NCBI GenBank assembly: GCA_965644295.1 | Contig: CBFFRP010000035.1 | Location: forward strand, 124,001 to 188,000 | Length of the DNA: 64,000 nt | Reading direction: 5' to 3' | From: Paraphysomonas bandaiensis | Lineage: Eukaryota > Protista > Chrysophyceae | The notes under the pieces: generated by a model | Database searches by the model: none | What the model was told of the DNA's origin: nothing | The model's input: the letters and a program-made list of their open reading frames with translations, nothing else | Program-made: the position numbers and the translations under genes | Shown here: one piece after another, positions 5,088 through 61,851 of the stretch | How positions within the stretch are numbered: the first letter of the stretch is position 1 | Layout of the letters: every line of letters starts with the position of its first letter

Positions 5088-5174
5088 CCCTCAACAAAGT
5101 CGGACTCGCCCCTTTTGTGGTGTTCTGGGGGATAAGTAACGGAGATATTTCTGCGGGAAACTAACGTGAGCCGC
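5088..5174 (+). ncRNA. Putative HDV-like self-cleaving ribozyme at the retroposon 5' end (copy 1, decayed)
   Basis: Segment order P1(ccctcaac)-P2(cggactcgc)-P3/L3(ccc ttttgt ggt)-P1'(gttctggg)-gg-P4(cggaga tatt tctgcg)-CTAAC-P2'(gtgagccg). Confidence 0.6.
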
Positions 5175-5624
5175 ATATATAGTCAGCAGATATTGTTCTG
5201 TCCACTCATAGCCAACAGTGCTTGTGTGGTACATGGGACACTAATAAGTATTCCTTGTTCCTTGTGTAGTGTGTAGACGTCTTTGGGCCTTGACGAATAA
5301 ACAGTAAACAGACATCCGGGACAGGGCCCACCTCAAGGGTAGCCGGGGTATTGGGCTGCTTGCTGAAGTCAAGCATCCGGGCTGTTCACCTTAAGGACTC
5401 AAAAATCCTGAAGTTAGCAGAGTCAGGTATATCAATATTCTGCTTGCTCAATGAGTTCGCTTTCAATTATAAAGCGAAAGTGGTTGTACCTTGGTGCTTG
5501 CGGTGACGCTCAAGCAGCTTTCGCAGCGTTAAATAGTAGGATATCAGAGTTCAGCACTAGTTAGTTATATTGTTTTGCTACATTAGTTCTGACTCTTACA
5601 CGCCAATTGCTAATAATCAAACAT
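5088..5624 (+). mobile_element. Non-autonomous retroposon (SINE-like), full-length copy 1
   Basis: Colinear with 37423-37923 and 37040-37392. It has the same first bases (ccctcaacaaag) as the 37423 copy, the shared 3' motif ctgactctta-acgcc-attgctaataat, and a possible decayed TSD taatacctt/taatagcatt. Confidence 0.8.
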
Positions 5625-5787
5625 TAATAGCATTTCTTTGGATTACAAGCGTGTTGCAATATATATTAATAGTTTATAGTGCTTTATATTGTTAAGTAAT
5701 TGAATCTACCAATCACAATATTGCATATAAATGGAAATTGTTGCTACCCTGAACAGCAACATATGAGCGCTATATTCAACACTCCGG

Positions 5788-25397: not shown

Positions 25398-25527
25398 GGA
25401 TATTGGAGTTATACCAGTTAGTTTATGGTAGTTACTTGTTACTTATCTAGGAGCTTTGACTAGTCTGTTCATCTAGCTACTAAGCTGATACTGACTCTTA
25501 AACGCCTATTACTAATAAACAGACATT
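25398..25527 (+). mobile_element. 5'-truncated fragment (3' end) of the ribozyme-headed retroposon
   Basis: ggatattggagtt...atctagctactaagctgatactgactcttaaacgcctattactaataaacagac matches the 3' ends at ~5539-5624, 37850-37923 and 38467-38522. Confidence 0.7.
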
Positions 25528-36672: not shown

Positions 36673-37422
36673 AGAATATTCGCTTAATAGTGTAGAAAGA
36701 ATATTTTTGTAGAATATTATGAGAGTTGTAGTGTTGGGGATTGTGGTACCACACTCTGTACTTGTTAGTGTTTGAAAATCTAAAGGATATACATAATAAA
36801 TATTTGTATTTAGCGTTGACTCTTTTGTGATCACGCCACCATCTTCTTTGCGGATGTAAACTAATATATTGAAATCTTACACAACGATGTAGAAATTCCA
36901 GATCCACGACCAAAAGTACTGTCTCATTATCCAAAATAACACTGGGCAGCGTGTAGCCTTGAGTATTGCTGTTTCCTGTTTCTGAGTAATTAATCGTTGT
37001 ACTTCTAAGGTATTAGAATTGTGATTGTGACATGAAGAATAACGTGAGCTGCATGTATGCATGTATAGCCAGCAGATAATTTTCTGCCCACTTATAGCCA
37101 TATGCTTGTGATACAAGAGACACAAATAAGTGCCACTTGTGTAGACTTGTTTGGGCATCCGGGAATGGGTCCATCTCAAATCTCAAGGGAATCCGGGGTA
37201 TTGGGCTGCCTGCTGCTAAAGTCAAACATCTGGGCCGTTCACCTTGAGGACTCCAAAATGCTGAAGTTAGCAGCTGTCAAATATATCATCATTCTGCTTG
37301 CTCATTGAGTTTGCTTTGAGTGATAGAGCGAAAATGGTTGTACCTTTTGGTGCTTGCGGTGACGCACTAGCAGCTTTTATTGCGCTAAATAGCAGGGATG
37401 CGTAAATATTAATTGCAATTAA

Positions 37423-37510
37423 CCCTCAACAAAGGCGGACTCGCACCTTTTCTTGGTGTTCTGGGGGATAAGTACCGGAGATATTTCTCTGGGAAACTAA
37501 CGTGAGCCGC
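37423..37510 (+). ncRNA. Putative HDV-like self-cleaving ribozyme (copy 2)
   Basis: P1 ccctcaac:gttctggg (6/8 pairs); P2 gcggactcgc:gtgagccgc; P3 acc:ggt with a 7-nt L3; GG after P1; P4 ccggaga:tctctgg; J4/2 CTAAC with the candidate catalytic C at 37497. Confidence 0.65.
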
Positions 37511-37923
37511 AAACATATAGTCAGCAGATATTCTTCTGCCCACTCATAGCCGAATGCCTGTGTGGTATAAGGGACACCAATAAGTGTCACTTGTGTAGAC
37601 GTCTTTGGGCCCTGACGAATAAACAGGCATCCGGGAATGGGCCCTCCTCAAGGGCATCCGGGACAGGGCCCACCTGAATGGTAACCGGGGTATTGGGCTG
37701 CCTGCTGAAGTCAAGCATCCGGGATGTTCACCTTAAGAACTCAGAGCAGAAGTGGTCGCACCTTGGTGCTTGCGGCGACGCACAAGCAGCTTCAGTAGCG
37801 TTCAATAGTAGGATAAAAAAGTGTGTACTGATTAGTTACAGGTAGAGGTCTAACTAGTTTGTCTAGCTACTAAAAGCTGGTGCAGGTTGTTAACGCCTAT
37901 TGCTAATAATAAGACTTTCAATA
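37423..37923 (+). mobile_element. Non-autonomous retroposon (SINE-like), full-length copy 2
   Basis: Flanked by a perfect 13-bp direct repeat taattgcaattaa (37410-37422, 37924-37936); no TIRs and no long ORF. Confidence 0.85.
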
Positions 37924-38744
37924 TAATTGCAATTAAATTTCAAACGTGTTTTAGCAACTAAATTCCAATTATTAATTATAGATCGCGCAATTATAATTGC
38001 TCATTACTCATTACTAGCACGAATATCATCTTCAACCGTACTTGCATTCCACTGCTCAACTTCCGTATATATCTTGAATCGTCATGATACAATACTTCGG
38101 TTTCACAGTTATAGCTATATATAGTATCTTTGACTACGTATTACTGTTTTTCACATTGTTTTTTTACGTATTCTACAGTACTATCTTAGAGAACCATACG
38201 TACAAAGAAACAGTACCTTTCTTAACATAAAGATATTTATAATGAGAGCCAGCCTTCCCACCACTTTAATAGCCATGAGTATAGGGGCATTAAGGGCAAC
38301 TCCTAACTCTAATATTTCGTCCTTATACCTTAGTATATAGTGAATAATTGCCACTTAATTGCAACCTTCCAACGAGGAATTATATTTGAAATTATTACGT
38401 ATACGTATATATTCTATGCAATTTAATTGCAATTCAATAAAATTGCTACGCAGCCCTGCTAAATAGTAGATATCAGACTTAAGCCCTGACTCTTAAACGC
38501 CTATTGCTAATAATAAGACATTCACTACTAAAATTATCTTACATTTCTAAACCAAACAACTTGCATTGGATCATCTTAGACTAATACTACTGATGCCACT
38601 CATATACTAATCATCAAACACGGAGGTGCAATATCATTGATATAATAGTAAATAGCAGCTGAAATACGATGGAAACGTAGTCTTTACTCATATGCACTTG
38701 TAAATGGTCACATGAAGCTTCCACCTGACATATACTTGACCCAA

Positions 38745-41653: not shown

Positions 41654-43372
41654 ATGTTGCATATATCTGTTCTTAACGATGATGTGATTCGTCTCATCAT
41701 CTCTATGATCCCACACACAGCTCTCCTTCCTGTGATCATGACTTGTAAGAGATTTCACGATATCGCTGACACCATGAGAGATAAGAGGAGAGTACAGTCA
41801 CATGTATCTCACTATTGTATGACGAACTCAATGGTCTCATGGGCTCTGTTGATGGGCTGTCGAGAGAGCCTGATAATGAATGGATGTGCACTATATGGCA
41901 AACTAGAGCAGATGAAACACATCATAAGACATAATACACATACGCAGGACACTATGCGCATATGGGGTAAGGAGTGTACTTGCCATGCTGCATATAATGC
42001 TGCAAGAAGTGGACACCTAGATAAACTGCAGTGGCTTAGTTCACAAGACCCTCCATGTCCAAGGGATGAATGGACTTGCAGTGGTGCTGCTAGAGGTGGA
42101 CACTTGGATATTCTGAAGTGGCTTCGTTCGCAGGATCCTCCATGGCCATGGGATACACGGACTTGCATCGAAGCTGCAAGAGGTGGACACTTGGCTGTTC
42201 TGAAATGGCTTCGTTCTCAGGATCCTCCATGTCCATGGGATAGACAGACTTGCATTGGTGCCGCTAGAGGTGGACATTTGGATGTTTTGAAGTGGCTTCG
42301 ATCACAGGACCCTCCATGTCCATGGGATAGACAGACTTGCATTGGTGCCGCTAAAGGTGGACACTTGGATGTTTTGAAGTGGCTTCGTTCACAGGACCCT
42401 CCATGTCCATGGGATGGAATTACTTGCAGTGGTGCTGCTAGAGGTGGACACTTGGATATTCTGAAGTGGCTTCGTTCACAGGATCCTCCATGTCCATGGG
42501 ATGGAATTACTTGCATGGATGCTTCTGGTGGTGGACATTTGGATGTTTTGAAGTGGCTTCGTTCGCAGGATCCTCCATGTCCATGGGATAAATGGACTTG
42601 CATGGATGCTTCTGGTGGTGGACATTTGTATGTTTTGAAGTGGCTTCGTTCACAGGATCCTCCATGTCCATGGAACGAAGAGACTTGCAGTGGTGCTGCT
42701 AGAGGTGGATACTTGGATATACTGCAGTGGCTTCGATCACAGGATCCTCCATGCCCGTGGGACAGACAGACTTGCATTGGTGCTGCTAGTGGTGGACATT
42801 TGGCTGTTCTGCGGTGGCTTCGTTCGCAGGATCCTCCATGTCCATGGGACAGACAGACTTGCATTGGTGCTGCTAGTGGTGGGCATTTGGCTGTTCTGAA
42901 GTGGCTTCGTTCGCAGGATCCTCCATGTCCATGGGATGAACAATCTTGCATCGAGGCCGCTAGAGGTGGACATTTGGCTGTTCTGAAGTGGCTTCGCTCA
43001 CAGGACCCTCCATGCCCATGGGATAGAAGGACTTGCAGTGGTGCTGCTAGTGGTGGACACTTGGATATACTGCAGTGGCTTCGATCACAGGACCCTCCAT
43101 GTCCATGGGATAGTATTACTTGCAGTGTTGCTACTAGAGGTGGACATTTGGATGTTTTGAAGTGGCTTCGTTCACAAGATCCTCCACTGCCATGGGACAG
43201 ACAGACTTGCATTGGTGCTGCTAGTGGTGGGCATTTGGATGTTCTAAAGTGGCTTCGATCACAGGATCCTCCATGTCCATGGGATAGATGGAATTGTGCT
43301 GCTGCTGCTGCTAGGGGTGGGCACTTGTATGTTTTGAAATGGATTCGTTCACAGGACCCTCCATATACCTAA
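41654..43372 (+). CDS. F-box-like + 15 x 29-aa ankyrin-repeat protein, intronless
   Basis: N-terminus LNDDVIRLIISMI...VIMTCKRFHDIA; 87-bp tandem units encoding QDPPCPWDxxTCxxAAxGGHLxxLKWLRS. Confidence 0.92.
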   Translation: MLHISVLNDDVIRLIISMIPHTALLPVIMTCKRFHDIADTMRDKRRVQSHVSHYCMTNSMVSWALLMGCRESLIMNGCALYGKLEQMKHIIRHNTHTQDTMRIWGKECTCHAAYNAARSGHLDKLQWLSSQDPPCPRDEWTCSGAARGGHLDILKWLRSQDPPWPWDTRTCIEAARGGHLAVLKWLRSQDPPCPWDRQTCIGAARGGHLDVLKWLRSQDPPCPWDRQTCIGAAKGGHLDVLKWLRSQDPPCPWDGITCSGAARGGHLDILKWLRSQDPPCPWDGITCMDASGGGHLDVLKWLRSQDPPCPWDKWTCMDASGGGHLYVLKWLRSQDPPCPWNEETCSGAARGGYLDILQWLRSQDPPCPWDRQTCIGAASGGHLAVLRWLRSQDPPCPWDRQTCIGAASGGHLAVLKWLRSQDPPCPWDEQSCIEAARGGHLAVLKWLRSQDPPCPWDRRTCSGAASGGHLDILQWLRSQDPPCPWDSITCSVATRGGHLDVLKWLRSQDPPLPWDRQTCIGAASGGHLDVLKWLRSQDPPCPWDRWNCAAAAARGGHLYVLKWIRSQDPPYT

Positions 43373-43520
43373 GACGAATGCACATTATTGCTGCTGCTAG
43401 TGGTGGTCATTTGCATGTATTGAAGTGGCTTCGTTCACAGGGCCCTCCATGCCCCTGGGGTAAATGAGCCTGTGTACTGCTGCTAGGGATAGGCACTCGT
43501 ATGTTCTGAAGTTGCTATTC
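43373..43520 (+). pseudogene. Decayed ankyrin repeat units beyond the stop codon
   Basis: gctgctagtggtggtcatttgcatgtattgaagtggcttcgttcacagggccctccatgcccctgg continues the repeat after TAA, with frameshifts and stops. Confidence 0.8.
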
Positions 43521-44200: not shown

Positions 44201-45319
44201 TATTTAACGAAATATTTATAGGCAGATTATGGACTATGGAACAGATCATATAAGTACAACAGACCTAAAAAATAATTCCAATTATTTGATACTAAACAAT
44301 GCACTCAAGTATTTCATAGTCCAGAATAAAGTATACTTGGACTTATATTTTGCATCATTGTGGCTATCATAATAGTGATTGCAATATATTGTGAGCCACT
44401 TTAACAGAACCAATATTGATGGAAATTTTGGCCCCACCACCAATCAATGTATTGCTTCCTAGCCCTGAAGTATAGTATAATTGACATATATTCACGATTC
44501 ATAATTGTATAACGTATAATAATCACAATTAATAGAGTGGTGCTTATATACATATACACACTCACACTAAGGTTAATACAATGAAAGTATTTCACAACAT
44601 GTCACCACATTACTGGAACAAGACAATGAGTGCCATGAACAATAGAAAACCTTCAACTGAAACTGGTCAGATCTGCACTTTGTTCAAAAGGGTTGGAGAT
44701 TTCGGACAAGATTTCCATTGAATGGTCAGTATGATTTATGGTTTTAATGAAATGAGATCACATCATCTCATAAGCAGTAATTTGACACGCAAAAGAGTGC
44801 CTCTATTGCTTATACTCGAGCTAGCACAGTGATGTCTTCGTCGATACTATAGTGAGAGATAATGGCTTCATACTCATGGATGCTGCAACCTCAATTATGT
44901 CCCTCCGTGAGTTAGAGGTGAAATACTTTCTAGTGCGCTGGATATACGATACCGTAACTGATCTGTGTAGTAAAGCGTGTACAGTTTAGAGAGAGAATGA
45001 ATCGTATATCTCTAACAGTACTACGAATATACAGCTATATATGTGAGATGCAGACGTGTATACACACACATGGCCTGACTGACTGTGTTAGTGAAGCCCT
45101 CACTCGTGTCTGTGAGTAGAGGCAGCAACAGTGTCTCTGAATGGTGTGCTCCTATTCACATATGCATGCAATGAGCACATGCTTCAAAGCGACACTGGCA
45201 TATAGACGTCTATCATACGCACACAGCAGTACGTACACAGATATACGACAGAGAAATACGTCGGTAACATACAGATATGGTGTTTGTACTGCTGTATGTG
45301 TACGGTGTATGTATGTACA

Positions 45320-45776
45320 GTGTATGTGTACGGGTGTGTGCATGTACACAGCAGTGTGTGTGAGTGTATGTGTACGGGTGTGTGCATGTACAGCAGTGTG
45401 TGTGAGTGTATGTGTACGGGTGTGTGCATGTACAGCAGTGTGTGTGAGTGTATGTGTACGGGTGTGTGCATGTACAGCAGTGTGTGTGAGTGTATGTGTA
45501 CGGGTGTGTGCATGTACAGCAGTGTGTGTGAGTGTATGTGTACGGGTGTGTGCATGTACAGCAGTGTGTGTGAGTGTATGTGTACGGGTGTGTGCATGTA
45601 CAGCAGTGTGTGTGAGTGTATGTGTACGGGTGTGTGCATGTACAGCAGTGTGTGTGAGTGTATGTGTACGGGTGTGTGCATGTACAGCAGTGTGTGTGAG
45701 TGTATGTGTACGGGTGTGTGCATGTACAGCAGTGTGTGTGAGTGTATGTGTACGGGTGTGTGCATGTACAGCAGTG
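45320..45776. repeat. 42-bp minisatellite, ~11 near-perfect copies
   Basis: Unit gtgtatgtgtacgggtgtgtgcatgtacagcagtgtgtgtga. Confidence 0.97.
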
Positions 45777-45874
45777 AGGGATGAGGTCGTCTTGAGGATC
45801 TATGTCAGTATATCAGTATATCAGTATATTAGAATTCAGTAATTTCGGTGGAAGACAGCAGGCAGTTCTGTGCG

Positions 45875-48474
45875 ATGGAGTTGCCATTGCAATTGGATGA
45901 TGGCTCATCTGAGATCATTGCGCTTGGCGAGGAGTCCACTGTTGTAAGGGAAGTGCTGTCAGAGCTGTGTAAGCTGAGGCGGCATGTGTCTCCCTGCAGC
46001 CCTCTGCAGCCCGATGATTTGTGTATACTTAAAATAACTAGGAATAGCAACGGAGAAAAAGTACGGAAGGTTTTGATGCCTAATGCTAGTATCCATGTAT
46101 CTGCTGATGACGCTGAGTATGCTGTGCTTGGATGCGTGTCGCGAAGTATCGATGTGGGAGACAGCCTGAAGAGGTATCGAAGTGTGTTCAAATCTTTTGC
46201 GGACGAGTTAGATAGAATTTCATCTGAGAGGTATATTGCATAAAACTATATCATGAACAAGTTATGATGCATATTTCGCAGCTCAAACACTAATGCATGG
46301 CCCCATTGCCTATTTTCATCAGCGAAGGTAGATTTTGCAAGGTCACTTGAGTTGTGCCTGGATGAAGCAGTATTTAAGTGCAAAAGAATACTACGTCATG
46401 CCTATAGTCAATCGAATTGTAATGATGAGCGGGTCACCATCAAGGGAGCCCTGGGTATGTGACAGAGTAAAGTGTCTAGCGTAGCACTAATCTATCTACA
46501 CAGACCTTGTGACGCAGCGTCAACTACATGATGCCGTGCAGTCATTAAGACGGAATGCTTCCACTATTGATGTTCTACCAAGAACAAATGGCGTAGGTAG
46601 ACATAGTCACTCCATTCAACCTGCAGAGGTTGACATGGAAGTTGACAGTGATGACAGCTCGGACACGTTTGTGCAGAGCGACACGCCGTCCAGTACTGTG
46701 ATATCGTTGAGATCTCCCATGGCTCCGTCAACTGGGAGTAAGCGAGAATCATTACTTGCGCCTGTCACATTGCCTATGGCGGAATCTGACCGTCCTCCAA
46801 GTACATGTGATGAATCTTTTCCCGAAAGCATACTAGAAGCAGGTACTTCACTTGAACCACATGACACGGAATTATACGTACATGAGGATAAACCCATGGA
46901 TGTAGAAGGCGACGACGCTACAAACGTAGCGGATCACACTATCAACAGAGAAATTGAAGGGAAAAAAATTGACGAAGACTTGACTCAAAGTGCATTTGTT
47001 GAACCTATTCACAATGTGAGTCCAATAGAGACAGTGGAGGCGGCTCCAAATCCACATTCTGCGGATGAAGGCCAACCCACAGATGATGGAGACGTCATCA
47101 ACAGTCAGGACAGTAGCAGTAGTGACAGCAGCAGTGATGAAAGTGGAACAGAGAGTAGCGACTCGTCAGATGATGAGGCCGATATCCCCGTCCCCGATAG
47201 AGTGAATGATGGGCATTCAGCAATTTTGGAACATGCACTAGAGAAAGAAACTGTAGTGGTTCCTGGGAATAAAGAGAATACTACCGAAGACAGTGACAGT
47301 AGTAGTGATTCATCATCTGGGTCGAGTAGTGGAAGTAGTAGTGATAGTGATTCTTCTAGTAGTAGTAGCAGTGGTAGCTCCAGTAGTGATTCTGAGTCAT
47401 CGTCAGACTCAGATTCGGACTCAGACTCAGACTCCTCATCTGATTCAGGTTCGGATAGCTCGGATGAAGATAAAGAGGACTTATCCATGCCACCCCCGGC
47501 TACCCCAGGCGCCCCATCTTCAGCTGTACCTGTAACCCCTAAACCCGTTAACGAATCTGTTTCATGTACAAGTGACTCACACAATGATGATCCTGATAGC
47601 GACGGGTCAAGTAGTGAAGATGACCCCAACGAGGTAGAAAGGGAAAAGTCATCGAGGCGTGTTTCTTTTGCTGGGGTGCCGGAACAAGTTGGCCATAAAG
47701 CTCTGCAAGTGCGTTTTTTGTTTACCAACACTTACCTACCTGAGACTAGTTTTATCTGTGATACAGTCGTTATTATTTAAGCCCCCTCTACTCAAGTCTC
47801 CGAGCCACTTTCTTGCATCATCGACAAAGATCATGGGAAGAGGTAGTCTTATATTTTGTTCGACTATACATCATGACACTCATGTTATTCCAGTGCCCCC
47901 CAATACATTACCAAGTAAGAGGCAAAACCCAGAAGAACTTGATACAACCGCAGGTATTGCGATCTTATTGTGTCATTAACTGCTGCTTACCCCAGTAGTT
48001 GTATGTCAGAAGCCTGGAGCTGACTGTGTAAATGAGAAGCCCGTTAACAAGTATAGAAGTTTGACAATTTTATTTCATAGATATGTGATTTACTGTTACA
48101 GGCGTGCGAAAGTGGAGAAGCATCATTCGGATGGCGAGAATGACGTGAGTACTGAATTAGCACCTTCTGATGTCGATAATTCAACGGTGAAGAAACGACC
48201 AGAAGCAACACCTTCGAGTGTCAAGAATTCATCTGCGAAGAAACGACCGGAAGCAACACCTTCTAATGTCAAGAATTCAACTGTGAAGAAACGACTGGAA
48301 GCAACGCCTTCTAATGTCGAGGATTCGCCTGCGAAGAAAAGACCGGAAACAACACCTTCTAATGTCGACGAATCAGCAGTGAAGGAAAGACAGGAAGCCG
48401 CACCTTCAAATGTGAAGAAAAGACCGGCTGTAACGCAAAGAGTAACGAGAAGCCGAAAGCTTAAGCAGACCTAG
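45875..48474 (+). CDS. Hypothetical Ser/Asp-rich, probably nuclear protein with C-terminal 16-aa repeats; multi-exon
   Basis: In-strand ORFs linked by GT-AG introns; poly-S/D tracts; RRVSF motif; repeats KKRPEATPSNVKNSTV. Confidence 0.65.
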
Positions 48475-61757: not shown

Positions 61758-61851
61758 TTACAGGTAGTTGTCTATCTAGCTTGACTAGTTTTCATCTAGC
61801 TACTTATCTAGTGCTGATTCTCGACACATATTGCTAATAATATGACTTTCA
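61758..61851 (+). mobile_element. 5'-truncated 3'-end fragment of the retroposon, followed by (AT)n
   Basis: ttacaggtag...gactagttttcatctagctact...attgctaataatatgactttca matches 37836-37921. Confidence 0.65.

Follow-up and report, generated by a model that had tools for sequence, protein, structure and literature searches.

Background

[quoted passage not shown] Insects (R2) and trypanosomatids (L1Tc) have retroelements that are processed by a ribozyme, and the non-autonomous copies among them are, in all cases known, shortened forms of the ribozyme-bearing long interspersed elements (LINEs). The subject here is a family of short interspersed elements (SINEs) in the chrysophyte Paraphysomonas bandaiensis, one copy of which occupies positions 37423-37923 of a 64,000-nucleotide stretch of contig CBFFRP010000035.1 (assembly GCA_965644295.1, positions 124,001 to 188,000 of the forward strand), referred to below as the window. 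An earlier annotation made from the letters of the window alone (the original prediction) took this copy for a non-coding retroposon that begins with an HDV-like ribozyme and is mobilised by an unseen LINE in a probable stramenopile. The host is indeed a stramenopile, the marine flagellate Paraphysomonas belonging to the Chrysophyceae, and the interpretation as a whole is supported and largely holds. A protein of 732 amino acids encoded in the window has 100% identity to a transcript of MMETSP1103, a sample with taxon id 36769 (Paraphysomonas). The family is best read, with a probability of roughly two in three, as a recently active, non-coding, non-autonomous retroposon of about 510 bp without long terminal repeats (non-LTR), i.e., a composite SINE that joins an HDV-like self-cleaving head to the tail of a LINE family designated LINE c.

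A closely comparable system is L1TcRz, the ribozyme of the Pr77 sequence of Trypanosoma cruzi (PMC3185411, PMC4035085, PMC4748587). It occupies the first nucleotides of a non-LTR element with C at +1, as the predicted ribozyme does here. The two have in common the CCCU start, ACC and GGU on either side of a 7-nt loop (L3) that ends in CGU, a single-pair P1.1, and the GUAC and GGAARCUAA motifs. The L1Tc head is likewise carried by non-coding, non-autonomous elements (NARTc, RIME and SIDER). There are also differences. The host is a chrysophyte stramenopile and not a kinetoplastid. The partner LINE has no such head, so the SINE is not a deletion derivative of LINE c. P1 in the SINE contains three extra nucleotides and a mismatch, and J1/2 and P2 are longer. 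Finally, the 3' end of the SINE, unlike that of L1Tc, is a structured LINE 3' untranslated region (UTR) without a poly(A) tract.

The SIDEs of Drosophila R2 (PMC3414825) resemble the present elements in that non-autonomous copies use the 3' end of a LINE for target-primed reverse transcription (TPRT). R2 and the SIDEs, however, are site-specific in the 28S ribosomal DNA, and the SIDEs keep both ends of their parent, whereas the present family is dispersed, has variable target-site duplications (TSDs) and, in contrast to elements of the SIDE/NARTc type, shares only its 3' end with a LINE. Canonical SINEs (PMC4494074) are similarly short and non-coding, with a head, a body and a LINE tail, a shared 3' tail, mobilisation in trans, TSDs and a high copy number. 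Their heads, however, are derived from tRNA, 7SL, 5S or small nuclear RNA (snRNA) and carry an RNA polymerase III (pol III) promoter, and a ribozyme-like head is found here instead. ARAGORN detected no tRNA-like sequence in the element, and a search of Rfam at E up to 10 gave no tRNA-, 5S-, 7SL- or snRNA-like head; nor could a pol III promoter be recognised in the head. With head and tail of different origin, the family would be a true SINE with a predicted ribozyme head in place of the pol III promoter, and such a head would be a different answer to the problem of keeping a defined transposable RNA after each jump.

Among the papers listed by a literature search, none connects HDV-like ribozymes with stramenopiles. 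A hammerhead ribozyme is present in the SINE-like Sm-alpha element of Schistosoma. Twister variants occur in non-LTR elements of S. mansoni (PMC8501958). In both of these, as here, a self-cleaving RNA resides in a dispersed retroposon; the class of the ribozyme and the logic of its position differ.

The repeat family and its ends

The window copy (501 bp) was used as a query against the 62.5-Mb assembly of its own genome, and the best 40 of 3374 first-look candidates were scored. The full-length copies scored number at least 40, and nearly all of the matches span the query from base 1-5 to base 500-501, with identities of 92-95%. Thirty copies were fetched with their flanks. The start CCCTCAAC is present in 26 of them, and all 30 terminate in …CTTTCAATA or a near variant; both ends of the element are fixed. 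Beyond both ends, the flanking sequence is unrelated from copy to copy, and exact TSDs of 10-17 bp (median 12) accompany 20 of the 30. The first base is identical in the young and in the older, more diverged subfamilies; the same start with unrelated upstream flanks, which the original prediction had pointed out for the two window copies at 37423 and 5088, was seen again in both.

The 22-nt tail has 445 matches in the genome at one mismatch or less, and the reversed tail, as a control, has none. The ribozyme core with the spacing found in the SINE is intact in 373 genome copies (exact motif matching), and several copies keep the 3' sequence only. TPRT is marked by TSDs of variable length, 5'-truncated copies and a fixed 3' end, all of which the family shows, and this part of the earlier account is borne out. 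Identity to the consensus is 97-99.6% among the fetched copies; their low divergence indicates that the SINE family was active very recently. The stretch is also present in sequencing runs, among them marine metatranscriptomes.

In some copies (L020 and L029), the terminal unit is doubled at the 3' end (TAAGACTTTCAATA-TAAGACTTTCAATA), as though the reverse transcriptase had slipped on its template there.

Relatives of the head in L1Tc and in metagenomes

The 77-nt Pr77 sequence of L1Tc was rebuilt from the primers and positions printed in PMC3185411 and PMC4748587, the overlapping pieces being free of conflict. The SINE head aligns to it with a score of 48, compared with 31.5 ± 4.6 for shuffled sequences, and only 10 of 5000 shuffles reach 48. 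The blocks common to the two are CCCT at +1, CACC-N4-CGTGGTG, GTAC before P4, and GGAARCTAA. Of these, CACC-N4-CGTGGTG covers P3, L3, P3' and the start of P1', and GGAARCTAA corresponds to the J4/2 joiner with the catalytic C.

A metagenome collection was scanned with a pattern that contained these shared blocks only, the positions of P1, P2 and P1.1 being outside the pattern. The scan returned 23 contigs in about seven sequence families (L083-L105), which come from soil, moss-associated and other metagenomes. In this class, the seven bases from the last G of GGTG complement a word that lies 10-25 nt upstream of CACC, forming P1. For P2, the bases directly 5' of CACC complement those located two bases after CTAA over 6-9 bp, and for P1.1, base 3 of L3 is paired to the base that follows P1'. 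These pairings hold in every family except two that are decayed or uncertain. The P1 words differ among the families (GCCUUGC, CUGCUUC, CCCUAGC, GGGCGAC, CCCCAUC and CCCUCCC), and P1.1 is U-A, C-G or G-C in the metagenome families and A-U in L1Tc. Pairing with the own strand amounts to 6.8 of 7 positions for P1 and 5.8 of 6 for P2, compared with 3.6 and 2.7, respectively, when the strands are swapped between families. In a MAFFT alignment of seven metagenome sequences, 98.6% of the cells are paired in the full pseudoknot versus 71% in shuffles, and a compensatory change is seen in 15 of 21 pairs (0 of 500 shuffles as high; slid controls, 37-56%). Judged from these sequences, the core pattern selects genuine HDV-like ribozymes, and it provides an effective probe for new ones in metagenomes.

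When a covariance model (R1) was built from the seven metagenome sequences, with no SINE row, it matched the SINE heads with scores of 27-34 bits and E values of about 1e-4 to 3e-6 in 156 kb. Position 1 of the model falls on nucleotide 1 of the SINE (window position 37423; L002:1501), and the match in the window ends at 37509. Genome-wide, all 150 scored matches have E < 1, the best of them reaching 40 bits; a few matches of the model are shorter, with 72-81 nt. The 25 columns that are invariant among 14 metagenome ribozymes in the model alignment are all kept in consensus-like SINE copies, in the correct order and with the correct spacing save for one 3-nt insertion. By sequence and predicted structure, the head is a member of a conserved HDV-like subclass that includes the validated L1Tc ribozyme, and its similarity to L1Tc does not exceed that to the other members. 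The HDV-like ribozyme type of L1Tc would thereby be extended to stramenopiles. With a Pr77 alignment score so rarely reached by shuffles, an independent model that sets its first position on the first base of the element, and the invariant class columns retained apart from the one insertion, it is extremely improbable that an arbitrary SINE head resembles the HDV-like fold by chance, a reading that could appeal to the lack of an Rfam match, to the unremarkable nested fold (see below) and to the lack of covariation within the SINE family.

One metagenome member matches RF02682 over its full length at 22.9 bits (the gathering score being 44), and none of the about seven metagenome families reaches an Rfam gathering score. 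RF02682 is represented by drz-Fpra-1 of Faecalibacterium prausnitzii, and its consensus core, CACCUCUACGUGGUG … GCUAAGA, is the class core. It differs from the SINE head in being bacterial and in belonging to no retroelement, and the SINE head is unmatched by it at E up to 10. As to genomic context, no reverse transcriptase domains were found in the open reading frames (ORFs) adjoining the metagenome ribozymes. One of these ribozymes (in L086:926-4802) lies about 80 nt downstream of an ORF of 1248 amino acids (aa) with a weak Ulp1 (Peptidase_C48) domain, a context that may be that of a transposon other than a LINE. In one of the families, many contigs have A-rich sequence ahead of the ribozyme.

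Architecture of the predicted ribozyme

The segments of the head follow one another in the HDV-like order P1, P2, P3, L3, P3', P1', P1.1, P4, J4/2 and P2' (Table 1). P1 consists of the pairs C1-G45, C2-G44, C3-G43, U4·G42, C5-G41 and A6-U40, next to an A7/C39 mismatch, and J1/2 is 6 nt long. Following P1' are AU, AA, GUAC and the P4 hairpin; J4/2, laid out as GGAAACUAA, contains C37497 and is followed by CG and by P2' (UGAGCCG). This register of P1, with A46 paired to U28, is anchored on the conserved AU-AA-GUAC motif and on the covarying P1.1 pair of the class, and on the same grounds an earlier register (C1-G43, with GG as P1.1) was rejected. The probability that the first six bases of the element pair by chance with the six bases before AU-AA-GUAC is about 0.003 (0.375^6, our own calculation). 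The covariance model prefers a hybrid P1 pairing, in which the lower five pairs are the same as in the C1-G45 register and small bulges at the top of P1 replace the A/C mismatch.

The double-pseudoknot layout of the original prediction stands for P2, P3, L3, P4, the CUAA joiner and C37497, and the L3 consensus that it had deduced, UUUUCGU, is that of the family; its register of P1 and P1.1 was off by two bases. The two mismatches that it had placed inside P1 vanish in the pairing from C1-G45 to A6-U40, and L3 lacks the usual C for P1.1 because P1.1 is a single A-U pair, as in most class members.

Among the subfamilies of the SINE, P4 alone varies. Four forms of it recur genome-wide, with a helix of 6, 7 or 8 bp in all of them; one form differs from another by a substitution and an inserted base that jointly add a pair. 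In the data of a DNA run, P4 variants are seen at positions 37482, 37485 and 37490. Covariation in P1-P4, which had been proposed as a check, is thus found in the metagenomic relatives for P1, P2 and P1.1, while within the SINE family the variation is confined to P4.

The LINE-derived tail

The LINE partner, described as unseen in the original prediction, was found in the genome. Domain scans (reverse transcriptase, APE-type endonuclease) show several LINE families, of which LINE c is the most abundant. Its 3' UTR (L080:2352-2541 and L081:2350-2541) matches SINE positions 319-509 at 86% and 84%, respectively; the ORF stops at about position 2300 of both loci, and the next 190 nt, to the end of the element, are SINE-like. 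The stem-loop of the 3' UTR recurs in the more distant LINE a (L069) and LINE b (L068), which also end in similar sequence. In a consensus fold of the 3' region of the SINE and of LINEs a, b and c, 16 pairs are kept, 5 of them via changes on both sides. The shared 3' stem-loop is plausibly a recognition element for the reverse transcriptase.

The APE-type LINEs have very long open frames (2000-3700 aa) on many contigs, and about 765 aa beyond their reverse transcriptase domain are without a Pfam match.

About 30 scored copies of LINE c all start at L082:1969, and the copies of LINE a start at L070:153 and continue with tandem monomers of about 163 bp; both 5' ends are unrelated to the SINE. 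The SINE head was absent from the 5' ends of LINE c (L082) and LINE a (L070-L079) in searches by BLAST and by the covariance model. Of the LINE sharing both ends of the SINE for which the original prediction had suggested a search, the 3' end was found (about 190 nt, LINE c), and the 5' head is lacking in LINE c and LINE a. The copy number of the LINE a monomers (L070:153-545) varies among loci, and in their arrangement they recall the monomeric promoters of LINEs.

Deletion is the origin of all non-autonomous retroposons known to bear a ribozyme (PMC3414825, PMC4035085), and the 5' ends of the LINEs are defined for families a and c only. An origin of the SIDE/NARTc type, in which the element is an internally deleted derivative of an unsampled ribozyme-headed LINE and not a chimeric SINE, is nevertheless rather improbable. 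The core motif with the class spacing has a single occurrence in the genome, in a deleted SINE copy, and all 373 matches with the SINE spacing look like SINE heads. R1 found SINE heads only among the loci examined, which include those with the 5' ends of both LINE families a and c, and LINE c, the closest donor of the tail, begins with unrelated sequence in its scored copies. As far as exact matching can tell, the ribozyme core in this genome is restricted to this SINE family.

Proposed cleavage, promoter activity and mobilisation

For the composite SINE, the following cycle may be proposed. Transcription of the element would start at a promoter nearby, or possibly within the head itself. The head (the first ~88 nt) would then fold as an HDV-like nested double pseudoknot with an L1Tc-type core and cut immediately 5' of C1, by which the upstream host sequence would be removed and the RNA given a uniform 5' end. 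Acting in trans, the reverse transcriptase of LINE c would bind by way of the stem-loop and terminal sequence that the two elements share, and insertion of the SINE RNA by TPRT would produce the TSDs of 10-17 bp and occasional 5' truncations. The predicted cleavage site coincides with the first base of the retroposon. From the sequences, we infer self-cleavage by master copies, with cleavage rather than transcription initiation setting the 5' end. The 373 intact cores would represent hundreds of potential self-cleaving sites in a genome of 62.5 Mb, and the heads could also cut host transcripts, as proposed for SIDER2 in Leishmania.

Several observations weigh against an active self-cleaving head. 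P1 is irregular, with an uninterrupted run of six pairs starting at +1 (including one G·U), an A/C mismatch and a 3-nt insertion. The spacing from GGTG to GTAC is 13 nt in the SINE, compared with 10 nt in all 23 metagenome contigs and in L1Tc, and P2 contains a bulged A. P1, P2 and P3 are invariant among the SINE subfamilies, so that the covariation comes from the relatives and not from the SINE. No HDV-family model of Rfam matches the head at E up to 10, and this check, suggested in the original prediction, went against it; no Rfam family matches the window at its gathering score. The nested minimum-energy fold of the head is no better than that of shuffles (z = 0.09), and that of the whole element is likewise not above shuffles, nested folding being uninformative for a pseudoknot. 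The partner LINE is without a ribozyme, unlike the situation in all known ribozyme-bearing non-autonomous elements. The RNA data consist of contigs only, with no 5' ends shown; some contigs of RNA or possibly-RNA runs extend across +1 and are no evidence either way on the 5' ends. Finally, a fixed 5' end by itself is no proof of cleavage, because the homologous head of L1Tc is also a promoter that starts at +1. By analogy with this internal promoter (Pr77), the label 'promoterless' in the original prediction should be considered unproven.

These considerations bear on the possibility that the head is of ribozyme descent and now serves only or mainly as a Pr77-type internal RNA polymerase II promoter, the 5' end being a start site and cleavage having been inactivated by the irregular P1. 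The corresponding 77 nt of L1Tc are an internal promoter with transcription from +1, and this activity is abolished by mutating CCCT (+1 to +4) or CGTG (+25 to +28) (PMC4748587). Both motifs are retained in the SINE (CCCT at +1 to +4, CGTG at +30 to +33), where they are also part of the ribozyme core, and the insertion and mismatch in P1 could weaken or abolish catalysis. This explanation is nonetheless considered unlikely. The consensus and 373 copies retain all of the class-defining core nucleotides, including the C of J4/2 and the partner in P1.1. The P4 stem survives the changes among subfamilies, which no known property of the Pr77 promoter requires, and the base of P1 beside the cut site is intact. 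Moreover, L1Tc combines promoter and ribozyme, so that promoter activity would not exclude cleavage.

A wider proposal, which may be entertained only tentatively, is that the head is a dual module of the Pr77 kind (self-cleaving ribozyme and internal promoter) outside kinetoplastids, captured by a chrysophyte SINE in replacement of the pol III promoter and independently of the LINE partner, and that a single sequence-conserved HDV-like lineage runs across trypanosomatid LINEs, uncultured eukaryotes and bacteria. If true, such a lineage would imply that the module is either of very ancient descent or has spread horizontally.

Copies within the window

The features of the composite SINE and the other copies of the family in the window are listed in Table 1. 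The perfect 13-bp TSD that had been reported around the young copy is confirmed, as are three further 5'-truncated copies, one of them in two parts. In the DNA run, about 98% of the depth has the consensus G instead of the T of the window copy at 37453. With this G of L3 replaced by U, the copy at 37423 is probably inactive as a ribozyme. In the copy at 5088, one base of P3 is lost and L3 is altered. Both full-length copies in the window are therefore damaged, and if the family has activity, it would be expected in the younger copies that resemble the consensus.

Table 1. Positions in the window of the SINE copies and of the predicted segments of the copy starting at 37423
Feature	Position	Strand	Details
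SINE copy, full length, 501 bp	37423..37923	+	slightly older subfamily; 93.9% identical to youngest-copy consensus
Left TSD TAATTGCAATTAA, 13 bp	37410..37422		perfect match to right TSD
Right TSD TAATTGCAATTAA, 13 bp	37924..37936		perfect match to left TSD
Predicted HDV-like ribozyme head, nt 1-87	37423..37509	+	match to covariance model R1; predicted cleavage directly 5' of C37423
P1 5' strand CCCUCAA	37423..37429	+	pairs with 37461-37467
P2 5' strand CGGACUCGC, A17 bulged	37436..37444	+	pairs with 37502-37509; placed relative to CACC and CUAA as in class
P3 (ACC/GGU) and 7-nt L3	37445..37457	+	L3 consensus UUUUCGU; this copy UUUUCUU (U at 37453)
Three extra nt GUU between P3' and P1'	37458..37460	+	in no other class member
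P1 3' strand CUGGGGG, then AU	37461..37469	+	A46 (37468) pairs with L3 U28 (37450) as P1.1
P4 hairpin CCGGAGA-UAUU-UCUCUGG	37475..37492	+	stem kept in four subfamily variants
J4/2 GAAACUAAC	37493..37501	+	GGAARCUAA common to all class members and L1TcRz; C37497 corresponds to the catalytic C
P2 3' strand GUGAGCCG	37502..37509	+	pairs with 37436-37444
LINE-derived 3' tail, branched stem-loop and terminal TAATAATAAGACTTTCAATA	37743..37923	+	86% over 191 nt to LINE c 3' UTR
Second full-length copy	5088..5629 (end approximate)	+	older subfamily, extra ~70-bp insert, head decayed
5'-truncated older copy	37064..37392	+	split by hAT-like element; resumes at 38459-38527
3' end of split older copy	38459..38527	+	continuation of 37064-37392
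3' fragment of severely 5'-truncated copy	25468..25527	+	family tail
3' fragment of 5'-truncated copy	61758..61851	+	family tail

The element that splits the older copy is a hAT-like non-autonomous DNA transposon (37393-38458) with an 8-bp TSD (CTAAATAG) and terminal inverted repeats of about 12 bp (CAGGGATGCGTA / TACGCAGCCCTG). The young SINE copy subsequently entered this transposon, which gave rise to a three-layer nest. A further high-copy repeat lies within the hAT-like element at 38022-38225, where the summed contig depth of the DNA run is hundreds-fold above that of the unique flanks.

Other features of the window

Three tandem arrays are present elsewhere in the window. Repeats of about 460-500 bp occupy its start (1-1634) and run past the edge. 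About 18 tandem units of 87 bp (41910-43466) lie within an ORF, and the ankyrin-like repeats that they encode are 29 aa long and contain the motif GGHLDVLKWLRSQDPPCPWD. At 45264-45893, a unit of 42 bp is repeated in tandem about 15 times, with several identical copies.

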